A stretch of 64,000 bases of DNA, from assembly GCA_951406725.2 (NCBI GenBank), contig OX597815.1, positions 43,586,001-43,650,000 of the forward strand, in the 5' to 3' direction. Under the pieces are notes generated by a model, which searched no databases, was not told the origin of the DNA, and was given only the letters and a program-made list of their open reading frames with translations. A program made the position numbers and the translations under genes. Shown piece by piece: positions 14,054 through 32,215 of the stretch. The stretch's first letter is position 1. Every line of letters starts with the position of its first letter. This DNA is from Octopus vulgaris (Eukaryota).

Positions 14054-14090
14054 TGTTTTACGTTTCGAGCAAAGCTCTTCTTCAGAAACA
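14054..14090 (-). ncRNA. Minimal type I hammerhead ribozyme
   Basis: TGTTT-CTGAAGA-A-GAGC(TTT)GCTC-GAAA-CG-TA^AAACA: intact core, 5-bp stem I, 4-bp stem II, loopless palindromic ACGT stem III. Confidence 0.8.
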
Positions 14091-14950
14091 GGAGACAGAG
14101 GAAAGTCCGAGAGAAAAGGGAGACGGAGAAAAAAAATCGCCAACAATCCACATGTAGTTACATTTTGAATGTATGTATGTATGTATGTATGTATGTATGT
14201 ATTGAGTGGACAAACGGAAGAAAAGTCCATTCAACACATTTAGTAGGGGTTACACATATTTAAAACAATATGATTCGGTTCCAAGCTACTTCAAGTTTCA
14301 CAGGCCACTAACGGGAGCTCGACACTATCAGCAATGTGTGTGTGTGTGCGCACGTATGTATATATATATATACACATATACATACATAGATACACATACG
14401 CACGCACACACATACAATATATACATATAAAATTTACACTCGCATTACTCGCTTTCTATAGCTTTCTCTACTTCAATGTACATGTCAATTTGTTGTCATT
14501 TCCTGCTTAATATTTTATAGGAATTAACTAAGAAGCTTTAGTAGGATGAAATTTGAGCTCTATTTCTAGTCATCAGTGAGTCCCTTTCCTTTTTCAGTAA
14601 ACCGTAAACCTACCTATACCACCCTTCCTAAAAACAACCTAAGACATAAGGTAGACCCGTAGATCAGAGATTTCCCATGACTGTTCGAGCTCTACATTAT
14701 TCAATTTATGCAAGAAATCGTTTACAGAGAGTGCAGATTGTAATTTCTCGAAGGTTTATTGTCCACCTAAAATCTCTTAATTGTTGAGCGTTCGATTGTA
14801 GTTACACATACAATTCTAGTGTGCAGGCTTGTTTATTGCTGCTTTCTTTACACACACACACACACACACACACACATACATACATACATATATATATATA
14901 TATATATATATATATATATATATATATATATATATATATATATATGTACA

Positions 14951-15862
14951 CGAGGTAGTATCAAAAGTTTCAGGACTTATTACGTTCATTAAAAGTAACT
15001 TATCTACCTAAGTTTTAACGTAATCTTCGAGATAGTCACCTTGCATGACAATGGACCGGTCCCAGCTTTCCTGCCATTTTTGGTATCCAGTCTGGAAGTC
15101 GTTTTCCGTAGGTGAGTCGTGGACCTTCTGCGAATCGCTCTGTATCTTAACAACGGTGTTAAAACGGCGATCTTTCAGCTATGTTTTCATCTTGGGGAAG
15201 AGATGGAAGGCCGTAGGGGCTAAATCTGGCAAATTGGTTGGGTGCAGAAGCGATACCATGTTGTTTTTTTTGCGAGAAACTCCCGAGTGAGGACAGCTTA
15301 GTGATAGAGTGCATTGTCGACGTGAAAAAATCCAATTCTTTGCGTTCTACAACCCCTGTCACTTTCGCTGAGTGTCCTCCCTCAAACGTCGCAGTAGAAC
15401 TCTCGATTGACAGTCCGATTCAGGGGACGAATTCTCGATGCACAATACCACATTTCCGGGAGTGACACCCGTGGCAGATCTTCCAGATTGGTCCATCATC
15501 TTCCAGAGACGTTCTTCCGCTTTTGAAGTGCCCACGTCATTTGAAACATTGCGTACAACCCATTGCCATGTCGCTGTAAGCTTGCCGAAGCATGCTCAAT
15601 GCCTCTGTAGCTGACTTCCCAAGTTTAACACAAAATTTCGTGTTGGCTTTCTGTTCCTGTCCATGACAAAGTTGCCAATTACACCATACACGTAATCACA
15701 AAAACAAATTTCACAACTTGCAAAGTAAACATAGCGCTGTCACCCGGCACACTGCCTCATGAAACTTACAGTTAGCTCTCAATGCATACGCGCACGCAAC
15801 CGTATGCTGCCATCTGTTGGTGCGCTACAGAGCTATTCCTGGAACTGTTTGATACCGCCTTA
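14951..15862 (-). mobile_element. Internally deleted mariner element
   Basis: TIRs CGAGGTAGTATCAAAAGTTTCAGGA / TCCTGGAACTGTTTGATACCGCCT next to TA runs. Minus-strand relics: KFCVKLGKSATEALSMLRQAYSDMAMG, FKSGRTSLEDD, GIVHREFVP, PDLAPTAFHLFPKMK, FQKW-like C-terminus. Confidence 0.9.
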
Positions 15863-16049
15863 TATATATAAATATATATATATATATATATATATATATA
15901 TATATATATATATATATATATATATATAAAAAATTGAAACGAACGGTCAATTCATGAACAAATACAAAAACTACATAAGTCAAATGGACGTTCACAGTGT
16001 ACATATGAGTTTGACGCCTAGTTTGCCACTCGGTGAAAGTGTAGACGGA

Positions 16050-16340
16050 AAATTAACGTAAACATTGTACAACAGGAGTATGTTTCCGGAAGCGGATGTC
16101 AGCTAAGTTTTCAGCGAATCTGTCGGCTAGACGGCGGCCGGAGTGTCCAACATACAAAGACTTCCGAAGAGTACATTCTATGCAATATATGACGTTAGTA
16201 GGTGTGCATGAAAAAGCGTCTCGGGTGTGCACAATGCGTTGGTTAGTTTCAGTGAGGGAAGTGCGTTGGTGATGAAATGGCAGGAGTGGCCTGAGAACTG
16301 GAGCAAGAAAAGGACCCACGGTGGGCGGAAATGGGGGAGG
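16050..16340 (-). pseudogene. Penelope-like GIY-YIG endonuclease fragment (second lineage)
   Basis: RDAFSCTPTNVIYCIECTLRKSLYVGHSGRRLADRFAENLADIR, preceded by a Cys/His linker remnant. Confidence 0.85.
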
Positions 16341-17794
16341 GAAGGAGTGGCATAATATCATTGAACGTGGTGGATGGCTGAAATTGTAACGCGCTAAACA
16401 AAATATCCCTTGACGTTCTGAGTTCAAATCCCTCCTACATCTACTTTCCTGTCAGCTTTCCAAGCTCATAAAATATTCTTTTCCAGGCATGTGGTGAATG
16501 TCAGAAATCACGTCAGAAATCTTTATTACATTTATACATAGATCGTGGGTAGGAGAATCGATAGAAAGCGCCTATGAACATTTAAATTTCCCAAATATCT
16601 GCCATATGTACTTCATCCGCATGCATATTTTTCGTCATGGTTTCCCATGGCTTTTCTGTTGCTACTTTCCTTGAACCTATACTTCTTGTTAGTTTGTAAG
16701 GACTTTTATAGATATTCCATAATAAATATCTATTTGTATAACGGCACTGACGTAAATTGAGTAGAAGTTTAATATTCTGCCAATTTCCGATTTAGTTCTC
16801 TCCAAATATTGAGAAAATTCCAATCCATTTGGATAAAAAAAAAAACTTCTTTAATTTGCTTGAACGCTAGTATGAATATCCTGGCCTTTAACAAACGTAG
16901 AGCCTCATTCGATTAATTCTGATGTACCAAATAAGAGCTAAATTACTTTGAATTGATAATTGACTGTACTACTAGACGTGAGTAACCAAGCAGATATTCT
17001 TCAGGAACCTATTCCGCACTCCGTCTCGTATTTTAATCCCACATCCTCTAGTATTGTGCCGATCTCCACCCTCGAAATTTGTAGTCATGTGAGTTGCAAG
17101 GCGACCTCAGTAGTACTGGTCGCATGAAAAAAAAAATTCAAAAAAATAAAAAAGCAAGTAAACTGCTTGAAAGTAAGAAGGGAATAGAGCAGTAGAAATC
17201 ATGCCAAAGCAGATATTGGCGCACAGAGCAATCCTTAGACGCGTCTGATTCCATACCAGCATAAAACGCTAAATGATGATGTGGAGACGTTAAATGATGA
17301 TGTGGAGAAGGAGGAGGAACATGATAATATAAATACATTCTCACGTATATACTTATACATATACATACGTACACTCACAAGCAATAATTCATTTTTAAAA
17401 CTTAAAAAAGGATTTTAATTCATTTATTTTTAACCTACATAATTACCTGAAAGTATACAAGCTCGTCGCTATACAAGCTCGTCGGTCCAGTGTATTAGCA
17501 GAGGCATGAAACTTATAAGAGTTGGCATTTAAATCCCGTGTGTTTTAATATTCATATCTCATTGGATTGAGTTTTGAAACCACTAATAATGGAACAGTAC
17601 ACTATACATACATGGTGGTGGCTGCCCCCTCGTTATCGAGTATGGCCATTGCACGAAATCAACGTTGTTATCGTGCAATGCTTGTGCAAGAAGATATTTT
17701 TTAAAGTGAGGAAAGGCTGTGCACTGAGTCAATCCCACTCACTAAGCAACAGCAGCCATAACCCGAAAAGAAGAACAAGTCAACATCATCGGTA

Positions 17795-30463: not shown

Positions 30464-30760
30464 GTGGCGAGCTGACAGAATTGTTAGCACGCCGGGCAAA
30501 ATGCCTAGCATTATTTCGTCTGCTGCTACGTTCTGAGTTCAAATTCCACCGAGGTCAACTTTGCCTTTCATCCTTTCGGGGTCGATTAAATAAGTACCAG
30601 TTACGCACTGAGGTCGATATAATCGACTTAATCCGTACGTCTGTCCTTGTTTGTTTCCTCTGTGTGTAGCCCCTTGTGGGCAGTAAAGAAATAGGTATTT
30701 AATATTCTGAGTTCAAATTCCACCATAGTCGACTTTGCCCTTTATCCTTTGGGGCCGAAA
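30464..30760 (+). mobile_element. SINE family A plus partial second unit
   Basis: GGTGGCGAGCTGACAGAA head; tail GCAGTAAAGAAATAGGTATTT runs into a second TTCTGAGTTCAAATTCC. Confidence 0.88.
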
Positions 30761-31829
30761 AAATAAAGGACTTTGCCCTGTTCCTCTTACACCCACCCTT
30801 CGACTTACACTTCCCACTATGTTGTTGTTCTTGTGACAAAATTTGGAACCAATATTATCATTCCCTTTAGAGTCAAAATAACAAAAAGAGAAATCAATTC
30901 TATTCAGTTTCTTCCTTTCTCTCTATTTTTTCCAGTTTCTCTCTCTTTCTCTTTTTCTTTCCTTTTTTGTTTGCTTGCTCGCTCATTCGCTTGCTTACTT
31001 CATAGGTATTTACAGATGCGTGTTGAAGGATCGGTCATGACGTTAACCAAACAGACCGGTTACATTACAACGCAGTGTTTAAAATTCTGAAGTTTAATGC
31101 AATTAATTCTGAAGTTTAATGCAATTAATCTTACTTTAGATTAACTATTTTCCATTGGACTGAAGTTTGCGGATTAGCGATCACGAATTCATAAATATTC
31201 CTATAAAAATATCTACGCATACTTAATGATAAATTTTGTGTGTGTGTGTGTGTGTGTGTGTGTGTGTGTGTGTGTGTGTGTGTGTGTGTGTGTGCGTGCG
31301 TGCGTGTGTGTGTGTGTGTGTGTGTGTGTGTGTGTGTGTGTTTGTGTGTGTATAATGAAAAAGTGTTTTCTAAATAACTTTAAACAATACACCTGTTATT
31401 ATAATCTGTTGTGTAATTCATTTAATTACTACTACGTTTCCTTATGAATTTGAATCTCCCGGGCGTTAACTTTACCCTTCATACTTCTAGTTGAATATAA
31501 CCAATTACTCTCGTCGACATCGAAGGATTCTAAATGTTAATAAATTACAATAAATTAACAAGTTATAAATTACTGTATTGAAGTTAATAATTAATACATA
31601 TATATATATATATATATATATATATATATATATATATATATATATATATATATATATATATATATATATATAGTGACGCATATTTGCCATTTGAATATGG
31701 CTAACCCCTAAGGGTGGATGCTACTGTAGTTTGTAGCCCCAGGAAGATATCTCCTCCAGCTGGCTATAGACACACTATCTGTGTCCTCTCAGTATTTGTG
31801 AAGGGAAGTCATTCTCCCCGTCTTCAATT

Positions 31830-31890
31830 CATGATACACACGTACCCGAGTTTCAAGATGTTTACCTTTCATCAGCGTGTGACAATCATG
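31830..31890 (-). ncRNA. Type I hammerhead ribozyme
   Basis: CATGAT-TGT-CACACG-CTGATGA-AAGGT(AAAC)ATCTT-GAAA-C(TCGG)G-TA^CGTGTG-T-ATCATG. Confidence 0.9.
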
Positions 31891-32154
31891 GTTGTCGACG
31901 AGAAGTCAGCTCCTTTCACAAATACATATACAGCTGGATGAGATATCTTCCTGGGGCTACAAACTACAGTAGCATCCTCCATTAGGGGTTAGCCATATTC
32001 AAATGGCAAATATGCGTCACGATGTGTTACCGCTACTGTTTATAACTCGCTCTGAGATTTATCATTGTTTGATTTCACTTTTTCAATATCAGTGTCAATC
32101 GACACTGGATAAAGTTTATGTATTTGTGAAGGGAGCTGACTTCTCGTCGACAAC

Positions 32155-32215
32155 CATGATTGTCACACGCTGATGATAGGTAAACACCTTGAAACTCGGG
32201 TCCGTGTGTATCATG
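32155..32215 (+). ncRNA. Type I hammerhead ribozyme
   Basis: CATGAT-TGT-CACACG-CTGATGA-T-AGGT(AAAC)ACCT-T-GAAA-C(TCGG)G-TC^CGTGTG-T-ATCATG; predicted cleavage after 32202. Confidence 0.88.

Follow-up and report, generated by a model that had tools for sequence, protein, structure and literature searches.

What are the hammerhead-bearing fold-back elements in this DNA, and is the fold-back itself the mobile unit? An earlier note had proposed at least six unrelated hammerhead families, carried mostly by mobile fold-back retroelements. Analysis of the window (the whole 64-kb stretch of Octopus vulgaris DNA) leads to a different answer. The region probably holds decaying copies of AT-rich retroelement RNAs, short and non-coding, that belong to five unrelated families and carry minimal hammerheads of the kind found in Penelope-like elements (PLEs); PLEs most likely inserted them, the fold-back being a by-product.

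Hammerhead motifs

A type-I hammerhead descriptor of the RNAbob kind was run over the whole 64-kb window in strict and relaxed versions. A complete motif has C3UGANGA9, G12AA14, A15.1...U16.1 and H17, with stems I and II pairable; the relaxed version also accepts a stem II whose base is bulged or mismatched. The strict descriptor gave 2 matches versus 0.035 in 200 dinucleotide shuffles, and the relaxed one 7 distinct cores versus a shuffle mean of 0.21 (maximum 2). When 539 decoys with permuted cores were scanned on the real window, the mean was 0.19 and the maximum 2. The enrichment is restricted to the true hammerhead core, decoy cores in the identical hairpin-rich DNA showing none. Six of the seven relaxed matches, representing five unrelated families, fall at 14.0-32.4 kb. 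These complete hammerheads lie at 14054-14090, 19114-19171, 23063-23126 and 31837-31881 on the minus strand and at 29796-29840 and 32164-32208 on the plus strand. The seventh match (8075-8168, minus strand) has a low-complexity stem II of 55 nt and is probably an expected false positive. The families, here called e14, e19, e23, e29 and e31, show no mutual similarity outside the core when compared within the window, as the earlier note had held, and no further copies were retrieved from any collection searched.

Chance matches in hairpin-rich, repeat-rich DNA, unrelated to ribozymes, are a very improbable source of these motifs. The stems are short, several motifs need the relaxed descriptor, and the match at 8075-8168 looks spurious. 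The comparison with shuffles suggested by the earlier note gave a clear excess with the descriptor, but the Rfam hammerhead models matched no site, whether the cut-off was the gathering score or E<=10, the smallest regions scanned being 121 nt long. However, neither control ever exceeded 2 against the 7 observed, what the relaxed version allows is precisely what has been published for minimal PLE hammerheads (PMC4209133), and the e31 motif is intact in both of its copies.

Helix III is short and self-complementary in all five families (ACGU, ACGUACGU, AAAUUU, ACUCGGGU with a G.U, and AUCAC-AG-GUGAU); it is palindromic in four, and in e23 it is a 5-bp hairpin with a 2-nt loop. These tiny stems had been described correctly, and together with the published hallmarks they agree with the earlier assignment to minimal PLE-type motifs, for which the literature had been cited accurately (PMC4209133, PMC7229834). 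An extra nucleotide lies between A9 and 10.1 in e14 and e29, a G10.1-C11.1 pair occurs in e14, e23 and e29, and e19 and the right copy of e31 have a U.U at the base of helix II, which is a known natural variant (PMC7229834). In predicted folding, dimers beat two monomers by 2.8-10 kcal/mol. The predicted dimer MFE contains an intermolecular helix III for e19, where it has 8 bp, and for e23, where it is a double hammerhead; the predicted e14 monomer forms stems I and II and nothing more.

Structure of the elements

No coding capacity could be recognised in the host elements, and four of the five valid families lie inside inverted-repeat elements, with the motif in the arms for three and in the core for one. 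The five of six ORF-less inverted repeats reported earlier are thus non-coding as stated but become four of five. The remaining family, e14, has no inverted repeat. It is a solitary insert of ~164 nt (14005-14168, minus strand) between (TGTA)n arrays, a microsatellite adjoining both ends, and a second copy is absent from the window. Its one minimal hammerhead, UGUUU/CUGAAGA/A-GAGC-UUU-GCUC/GAA/ACGU/A/AAACA (14054-14090, minus; predicted cleavage 14059/14058), combines an additional A between A9 and 10.1 with a G10.1-C11.1 pair and, at 15.2-16.2, a palindromic CG, and these three features are the hallmarks of minimal PLE hammerheads (PMC4209133).

Each of the elements e19, e23, e29 and e31 consists of inverted copies arranged head-to-head, the 3' ends facing outward, and (TA)n adjoins three of the four. 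The left copy of e19 (18918-19227, sense on minus, 3' end at (TA)n) is separated by a 6-nt spacer from the right copy (19234-19528, plus), the arms being identical at 293 of 310 positions. The left hammerhead (19114-19171, minus; predicted cleavage 19120/19119) has CUGAAGA, a U.U at the base of stem II and the helix III ACGUACGU, and can be drawn alternatively as type III with an upstream GUAUGU; the right one (19290-19345) is dead, a 1-nt core deletion leaving CUGAGA. The arms of e29 are identical at 131 of 154 positions, with a spacer of 33 nt. Its left copy (29617-29764, minus) has a dead hammerhead at 29722-29763, in which U4 has become A (CAGAAGA) and stem II is broken. The right copy (29798-29951) holds the intact CUGAAGA/G-GUCAC...GUGAC/GAA/AAAUUU/C (29796-29840, plus; predicted cleavage 29834/29835), in which an additional G separates A9 from 10.1, helix III is palindromic and there is a G-C base pair. 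The second-arm hammerheads that had been placed near 19294 and 29720 therefore have broken cores, and the two reported in e31 are both intact.

The e31 element spans 31.67-32.42 kb and comprises an inverted copy, a partial upstream copy and a 352-nt unit. The inverted copy (31672-31931, minus) is 5'-truncated, has its 3' end at (TA)n, lacks a 45-nt tail and carries an intact hammerhead (31837-31881, minus; predicted cleavage 31843/31842). Beyond a junction with 4-nt TATA microhomology (31927-31931) lies the partial copy (31933-32066, plus), which is the last 134 nt of the unit, tail included, and makes a pLTR-like partial tandem; it is identical to 32277-32418 at 135 of 142 positions. The unit itself (32067-32418, plus) consists of a 47-nt junction segment and a 305-nt copy, followed by (TA)n. 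It has a GC of 0.43, a folding z of -5.0, an intact hammerhead (32164-32208, plus; predicted cleavage 32202/32203), a GCUAC-AAACUACA-GUAGC hairpin (32308-32325) and the one-sided 45-nt tail (32374-32418). The partial tandem implies a stably folding unit of ~352 nt, which favours a retrozyme-like unit.

The longer copy of e23 (22541-23214, sense on minus) is composed of a hammerhead-bearing 286-nt core and a 390-nt arm with its 3' end in (TA)n; the segment 22584-23214 has a folding z of -13.9. The hammerhead GUUGCA/CUGAAGA/GCA...UGC/GAA/AUCACAGGUGAU/A/UGUAAC (23063-23126, minus; predicted cleavage 23069/23068) satisfies the strict descriptor; its stem I has 6 bp, and G10.1 pairs with C11.1. The inverted copy (23215-23601, plus) is a 5'-truncated arm without a hammerhead, its 3' end also in (TA)n, and is 96% identical to 22541-22928 in opposite orientation. 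The two copies are thus unequal, one being longer by 286 nt and the sole carrier of the motif.

A small inverted-repeat element, e196 (19641-19796, no strand assigned), has terminal repeats of ~28 nt and adjoins (TA)n. The earlier note had read a split hammerhead at 19664-19752, but CUGAAGA lies at 19746 on the plus strand and GAAACUCGGAGU (GAAAC...) at 19664-19683 on the minus strand, so that no single RNA has a complete hammerhead. The families consequently number five, with six complete motifs, and not at least six. Possibly e196 is what remains of a head-to-head pair whose copies suffered complementary deletions. Another fold-back, compact, AT-rich and hammerhead-free, was observed at 18206-18440.

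Origin of the fold-backs

The hammerheads point outward in e19, e29 and e31, the evidence on orientation coming from these 3/3 pairs only. Of 10 element ends, 7 have a microsatellite no more than 12 nt away, versus 14.7% of random positions, a comparison whose P value is optimistic because ends of the same element are interdependent. The hammerhead cores have decayed about as fast as their flanks, as fits inert copies, and two of the three paired elements have one dead core; the hammerhead-bearing copies of this region are probably inert.

According to the earlier note the fold-back is itself mobile, a non-autonomous ribozyme-processed retroelement whose read-through would supply self-cleaving RNA as well as a long dsRNA; this hairpin would be a substrate for ADAR. 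Four elements do fold back strongly (MFE of the whole e23, -667 kcal/mol), e19 with its 6-nt spacer is an almost perfect palindrome, coding capacity is absent, and the one observation bearing on the ADAR idea is a marginal A/G excess among sense-oriented copy differences (16 versus 5, P about 0.047). This origin is nevertheless unlikely. The copies of e23 and e31 are unequal, e31 having a partial tandem and a tail on one side only, the 3' ends point outward, e14 has no inverted repeat, and no second fold-back of any family was found elsewhere in the window. In a head-to-head pair each sense hammerhead occupies a different strand. Read-through RNA would therefore combine a sense motif with an antisense one, folding into a duplex that hides the ribozyme, and the cis dimer implied by helix III could not form. 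The identical geometry is moreover documented as a PLE insertion product (PMC8557442).

Somewhat less likely still are palindromes made at the DNA level, either MITE-like or Foldback-type transposons or products of replication or repair at TA sites, with derived or captured hammerhead-repeat sequence. Terminal inverted repeats, TA-rich insertion sites, the hammerhead-free fold-back at 18206-18440 and the MITE-like terminal repeats of e196 are consistent with such an origin, but against it stand the enrichment of the true core over decoys in a hairpin-rich window, the outward motifs in all three pairs, the tandem and tail of e31, the asymmetry of e23 and the non-palindromic e14; transposase relics are absent from the window.

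Penelope-like relics and a proposed insertion mechanism

Two of the three PLE relics claimed earlier were verified as endonuclease regions, and the third, at 58.4 kb, is unsupported. A GIY-YIG endonuclease fragment at 16056-16451 (minus; Pfam GIY-YIG E=0.0078) has 536 library matches, the best at 8.8e-20, and an EN-domain HMM E=1.5e-25; having no RT upstream, it is a 5'-truncated PLE copy. The relic at 10783-11588 (plus) combines a post-RT region (10783-10974) with a degraded GIY-YIG region (11235-11588), contains stops and frameshifts, and was recognised by phmmer (6.1e-8 to P0093), colinear tblastn to P0027 and the EN HMM (E=2.6e-4). Both (10.8-11.6 and 16.1-16.5 kb) are 5'-truncated. The window as a whole has no detectable RT domain, neither relic was found to have a hammerhead downstream, and no hammerhead element in the window adjoins an RT/EN ORF.

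In the proposed mechanism the GIY-YIG endonuclease of a PLE would cut both strands of an AT-rich or microsatellite target, and each 3'-OH would prime reverse transcription of an RNA template carrying a hammerhead, starting close to the template's 3' end. Two 5'-truncated cDNAs would then join head-to-head in mid-element. The resulting pair would be inverted, its 3' ends facing outward, and in some cases accompanied by a partial tandem and a tail on one side. Because such a pair would arise where two cDNAs meet, the fold-back would be a by-product of insertion and would not itself be the unit that transposes. The template may have come from an autonomous PLE, as its pLTR or 3' end, or from a short retrozyme-like unit that is non-autonomous. 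The near-equal arms of e19 and e29 go against the prediction of independent 5' truncation of a long RNA; with spacers of 6 and 33 nt, they would need short full-length templates or a snap-back step. The hammerhead would work at the RNA level, in source loci, where adjacent sense copies in tandem or pLTR transcripts would pair through the self-complementary helix III into a double hammerhead that, possibly protein-assisted, would cut multimers to unit length.

Comparison with known systems

The minimal type-I hammerheads of PLEs (Cervera & de la Pena 2014, PMC4209133, cited for Terminons too) appear, to judge from sequence, to be among the closest likenesses of the motifs described here. They have in common the core, the type-I topology and the very short palindromic helix III implying dimer action, as well as the extra A9-10.1 nucleotide (e14, e29) and the G10.1-C11.1 pair (e14, e23, e29). 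Diversity between families of one genome is likewise high, and standard models miss them. Unlike those of PLEs, the motifs of this region are never in a pLTR beside an RT/EN ORF, e19 and e31 have U.U or A-U at 10.1-11.1, and helix III of e23 is longer and hairpin-capable.

The metazoan non-LTR retrozymes (Cervera & de la Pena 2020, PMC7229834; Li et al. 2026 preprint, 10.64898/2026.07.22.740005) are 150-450 bp long and low in GC (PMC7229834); they are reported as derivatives of PLE pLTRs, with 57 families in Xenopus. Shared with them are the small size of the units (a few hundred nt), their low GC and non-coding character, the single type-I hammerhead, the proposed dependence on PLEs and, in e31, a 352-nt unit (within 150-450 bp) in partial tandem with a significantly stable fold. 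The present units, seen as DNA alone, differ in forming no multi-copy tandem arrays (1.4 units at most, and no tandem in four of the five families), and their hammerheads are minimal, not canonical with loop-loop contacts.

Insertions of PLEs show 5' truncation, partial pLTR tandems, an inverted and 5'-truncated copy next to them, a tail of 30-40 bp on one side and a bias for microsatellites (Craig et al. 2021, PMC8557442), a pattern that fits an enzyme cutting and extending both target strands, as the PAc enzyme does at AT-rich DNA (PMC11167929). The same architecture is seen in the head-to-head e19, e23, e29 and e31 with 3' ends outward, in the partial tandem and 45-nt one-sided tail of e31 and in ends lying in (TA)n or (TGTA)n, with PLE endonuclease relics also present in the window, whereas the units here are only about 150-680 nt long without an ORF and the arms of e19 and e29 are nearly equal in length. 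By this analogy the fold-back shape is best read as the known Penelope-like insertion scar, and the region would thus exemplify an already known kind of element and not a new one.

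Hammerhead cores in the window

The window was searched with an RNAbob-like descriptor of the type-I hammerhead, which reads in order one stem I strand, CUGANGA, a stem II hairpin, GAAA, helix III, U, H and the second stem I strand. Helix III was allowed as a hairpin or as a wholly self-complementary tract of at most 12 nt. The strict descriptor found two sites, 23063-23126 (-) and 31837-31881 (-), where 200 dinucleotide-preserving shuffles gave an expectation of 0.035. A relaxed descriptor, tolerating one mismatch or bulge at the stem II base and one bulge in stem I, found seven distinct cores in the window against 0.21 expected, with a shuffle maximum of 2. 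Because shuffled DNA is poor in hairpins, decoy cores on the real window served as a second control; with 539 permuted cores the relaxed descriptor averaged 0.19 matches and never found more than 2. Only the true hammerhead core shows the enrichment.

Full cores are present at six sites, in five non-coding elements named by their kb position: e14 (14054-14090, -), the left copy of e19 (19114-19171, -), e23 (23063-23126, -), the right copy of e29 (29796-29840, +), and the left (31837-31881, -) and right (32164-32208, +) copies of e31. Each site has the type-I residues C3-U4-G5-A6-N7-G8-A9 and G12-A13-A14, an A15.1-U16.1 pair and an H17 that is not G. The seventh relaxed match, 8075-8168 (-), has a low-complexity stem II of 55 nt and is probably a false positive of the kind foreseen by the controls. 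It falls in a repeat found again at about 41591-41660 (+), the common sequence being GGACAGCUGAUGAAGGG..., and since the GAAA is not kept in that copy the match probably arose by chance.

The earlier note had claimed at least six hammerhead families between 14054 and 32215, an interval that excludes this seventh match. Six intact motifs do lie there, but they make up only five families, because three of the proposed sites fail. The motif at 19290-19345, in the right copy of e19, has a broken core (CUGAGA, a 1-nt deletion), and that at 29722-29763, in the left copy of e29, has the core CAGAAGA and a broken stem II. The "split" hammerhead at 19664/19752 was rejected because its halves sit on opposite strands; a hammerhead can be composed on paper from both arms, but it would be reconstructed, not observed. 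Overall, the observation in the note was confirmed in part and its interpretation supported in part.

None of the Rfam hammerhead models matched any site, either at the gathering score over the whole window or at a permissive threshold (E<=10) in regions of 2.8 kb, 221 nt and 121 nt; a permissive run on the whole window was swamped by spurious microsatellite and miRNA-model matches. The hammerheads are identified by the descriptor, its controls and their genomic setting. Scans of the window for hammerheads of type II and type III yielded only one more way, as type III, to draw the core of e19.

Architecture of the motifs

All six sites have a stem I of 4-6 bp and a stem II of 3-5 bp or more. 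In four families helix III is a mere 4-8-nt self-complementary tract, so that a second copy is needed; in e23 it can form within a single copy. The palindromic tracts are ACGU, ACGUACGU, AAAUUU and ACUCGGGU (with G.U), and AUCACAGGUGAU is near-palindromic. Cofolding predicted dimers more stable than two monomers by 2.8-10 kcal/mol. The minimum-energy dimers of e19 and e23 are joined by an intermolecular helix III, as in a double hammerhead, and folding of e14 forms stems I and II alone.

Penelope-like elements (PLEs) carry minimal hammerheads in their flanking repeats; these hammerheads are hugely variable in sequence within a genome and are likely to act as dimers (Cervera and de la Pena, PMC4209133). 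Their hallmarks are an extra nucleotide between A9 and 10.1, conservation of a G10.1-C11.1 pair, and a palindromic 15.2-16.2 or loop 3. Two window motifs fit these features exactly, e14 (CUGAAGA-A-GAGC...GCUC-GAAA-CG-U) and e29 right (CUGAAGA-G-GUCAC...GUGAC-GAAA-AAUU-U), both having the extra nucleotide and the G10.1-C11.1 pair. The e23 motif has the G-C pair alone, and neither feature occurs in e19 left (U.U), e31 left (A-U) or e31 right (U.U). Axolotl retrozyme hammerheads are reported to have the same U.U at the helix II base as e19 and e31 right (PMC7229834). In e14 and e29, what the descriptor treated as relaxations are hallmarks of the PLE family itself. One difference is that the PLE minimal hammerhead sits in the flanking repeat (pLTR) of an element with a reverse transcriptase (RT) and a GIY-YIG endonuclease, whereas the window motifs adjoin no such ORF.

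The e19 core (minus strand) lies between two similar substrate-like modules, GUAUGU-U-CUUAC upstream (19201-19213) and GUACGU-A-CUCAA downstream (19115-19127). It thus allows two drawings, one of type III with predicted cleavage near 19206 and one of type I with predicted cleavage after 19120. The decoy rate for type III is 0.011 per core.

Structure of the host elements

Element anatomy was worked out from self-comparison and arm alignments. The e19 element consists of two copies, 18918-19227 (-) and 19234-19528 (+), identical at 293 of 310 positions and separated by 6 nt. The e29 copies, 29617-29764 (-) and 29798-29951 (+), are identical at 131 of 154 positions with a 33-nt spacer. From left to right, e31 opens with (TA)n and an inverted copy on the minus strand, which runs from 31931 down to 31672. 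Next comes a partial plus-strand copy (31933-32066), representing the unit's final 134 nt; a segment of 47 nt separates it from a further copy (32114-32418, +), and (TA)n follows. The inverted and partial copies have a TATA in common at their junction, and the 45-nt end of the plus-strand copies is absent from the inverted copy. The motifs of e19, e29 and e31 point outward, so the copies are head-to-head. In e23 the arms 22541-22928 and 23215-23601 are 96% identical and surround a core of 286 nt with the hammerhead on the minus strand; both 3' ends lie within (TA)n. Most simply, e23 would be a long copy on the minus strand, made up of the core and the left arm, opposite a 5'-truncated plus-strand copy. 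The e14 element is a solitary 164-nt insert flanked by (TGTA)n arrays.

Perfect microsatellite lies at most 12 nt away from 7 of the 10 element ends, compared with 14.7% of random positions, although the P value is optimistic because ends belonging to the same element depend on each other. Runs of perfect microsatellite of at least 12 nt, mostly (TA)n, (TGTA)n, (GA)n, (CA)n and (TCTA)n, make up 11.3% of the window. They dominated a direct-repeat search of the whole window, which was uninformative on the hammerhead elements. Within two of the three pairs the core is dead in one copy, and the arms diverge by 4-15%. The cores decay at about the pace of their flanks, in keeping with inert copies.

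A hairpin whose loop is AC-rich, GCUAC-AAACUACA-GUAGC, is present in all e31 copies, at 31720-31737 (-), 31956-31973 (+) and 32308-32325 (+), about 50-95 nt from the 3' end of the copy. It recalls the AC-rich stem-loop at which PAc, a PLE protein, begins reverse transcription (PMC11167929). The core of e23 terminates in a 36-nt segment, GTGCGGTACCTATGAATAATAGTACCCTCTATATAA, found at 22935-22970 (-), 23432-23467 (-) and about 22690-22725 (+). The same segment forms the loop of a hairpin of about 250 nt within each e23 arm, one per orientation.

No Pfam domain or homologue was found for any of the elements. A protein collection queried with chance ORFs from the e31 arm and the core of e23 yielded no related copies, and exact-pattern DNA scans for the e31, e23 and e19 motifs gave no matches in metagenome, prokaryotic-genome or viral collections.

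Fold-back structure and its possible origins

The earlier note took the elements to be non-autonomous, ribozyme-bearing and mobilised by PLEs, with the fold-back itself as the mobile unit. It is reasonable to link the elements to PLEs and to see them as non-autonomous and ribozyme-bearing, but a mobile fold-back is not favoured. The paired copies of e23 and e31 are unequal, the tail is one-sided, the e14 family has no inverted repeat, and the sense motifs of head-to-head copies are on opposite strands. With this last arrangement, a read-through RNA would pair a sense copy with an antisense one in a duplex masking the ribozyme, and the second sense copy implied by a palindromic helix III would be missing.

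The elements might have originated as DNA-level palindromes or MITEs, an improbable origin in our estimation. In its favour is a fold-back at 18206-18440 that has no hammerhead motif. This structure is compact and AT-rich, with 105-nt arms that are 93% complementary around a 25-nt spacer.

Differences between paired copies, read in the hammerhead-sense orientation across the e19, e29 and e31 arms, comprise 16 A/G and 5 C/T. The expected A/G share is 0.525, and the two-sided P of about 0.047 comes from one post-hoc test on 21 sites. At most this hints weakly at an A/G bias on the sense strand. That the fold-backs are transcribed, their long hairpin RNAs edited by ADAR and then reverse-transcribed into the genome, making them a functional source of dsRNA and not dead scars, seems improbable. 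If it were true, A-to-I editing would leave a heritable A-to-G footprint in new hammerhead-bearing copies.

PLE relics and other repeats

Of three PLE relics previously proposed in the window, two are backed by profile and library matches. The first, at 16056-16451 (-), is a GIY-YIG endonuclease fragment (Pfam E=0.0078) with 536 matches in the representative library, the best at 8.8e-20, and with E=1.5e-25 against an endonuclease HMM made from those matches. The second, at 10783-11588 (+), consists of two pieces colinear with the library PLE protein P0027: 10783-10974 (+) resembles PLE proteins in their post-RT region (6.1e-8) and 11235-11588 (+) matches the endonuclease HMM (2.6e-4). The third, 58394-58744 (+), was rejected as unsupported, having no Pfam match, no homologue and E=10 against the same HMM. 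It is a 117-aa open frame that looks GIY-YIG-like by eye (IIYQC...YIGTT).

No hammerhead was found downstream of either supported relic, and no RT or transposase domain was detectable among 134 ORF pieces of the window. Exact look-up of the endonuclease relic ORF returned no record. The contigs encoding P0027 and a second library PLE protein, P0002, both from other organisms, have neither a hammerhead nor similarity to the window elements.

Two other repeats were observed. A SINE-like family with a conserved GAGGTCGACTTTGCCTTTCATCCTTTCGGGGTCGAT... core has about 10 copies, including 30459-30693, 40391-40625, 43256-43591, 46346-46926 and 49902-50136, three of them adjacent at 46.3-46.9 kb. Another dispersed repeat forms inverted pairs (74-83% identical) at 6024-6988 and 36840-38163, and its chance translation, ...LILCKPSTY.IGLF.RTAKLR..., is seen again near 22.2, 40.0, 50.4 and 54.8 kb.

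Comparison with PLE insertions and retrozymes

PLE insertions are strongly 5'-truncated and biased to microsatellites, and are often directly adjoined by an inverted 5'-truncated copy (Craig et al., PMC8557442). Partial tandems are frequent and create the pLTRs, in which the hammerheads are located, and there is a tail of 30-40 bp, often one-sided. The PAc study (PMC11167929) showed that the PLE protein cuts and extends both strands of AT-rich targets, the hammerhead being protein-assisted and dispensable for insertion in vitro. Together these facts predict the head-to-head arrangement seen in the window: two cDNAs would be primed at either side of one break and join head-to-head.

The window elements share the microsatellite bias. 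An inverted adjacent copy with 3' ends outward is seen in e19, e29 and e31, which have the motif in both arms, and e23 appears as one long and one truncated copy. A partial tandem and a tail are found in e31 alone (a 134-nt upstream partial copy and a one-sided 45-nt tail); neither was seen in e14, e19, e23 or e29. The near-equal arm lengths of e19 and e29 are a weak point of the PLE-insertion reading, as they need short full-length templates or a snap-back step and not independent truncation of a long RNA.

No new kind of ribozyme or element is revealed. In the literature searched, hammerheads and retrozymes are not described from cephalopods; PLEs are reported as a repeat class in Octopus. 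If confirmed genome-wide, the findings would add PLE-type minimal hammerheads and retrozyme-like elements that are non-autonomous to a lineage for which that literature describes none, and would offer compact natural cases of both-strand-primed insertion, whose demonstration (PMC11167929) is in vitro only. Especially useful is e31, which has an inverted copy, a partial tandem, a tail and junction microhomology all in one 750-bp locus.

Non-LTR retrozymes are tandem, non-coding units of 150-450 bp with low GC, each with a type-I hammerhead (PMC7229834). A 2026 preprint (10.64898/2026.07.22.740005) argues that retrozymes are derived from PLE pLTRs as non-autonomous elements and describes 57 families in Xenopus. 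Element GC in the window is 0.31-0.45, and folding z-scores are -5.0 for e31, -13.9 for e23 and between -2.0 and +1.1 for e19, e29 and e14. Unlike retrozymes, the window elements form no tandem arrays; e31 alone has 1.4 units, with one hammerhead per strand. The e14, e19, e23 and e29 elements are assignable neither to a retrozyme-like unit nor to a truncated PLE 3' end. The e31 unit, with its 352 nt, GC of 0.43, stable predicted fold and partial tandem, appears to fit the retrozyme description.
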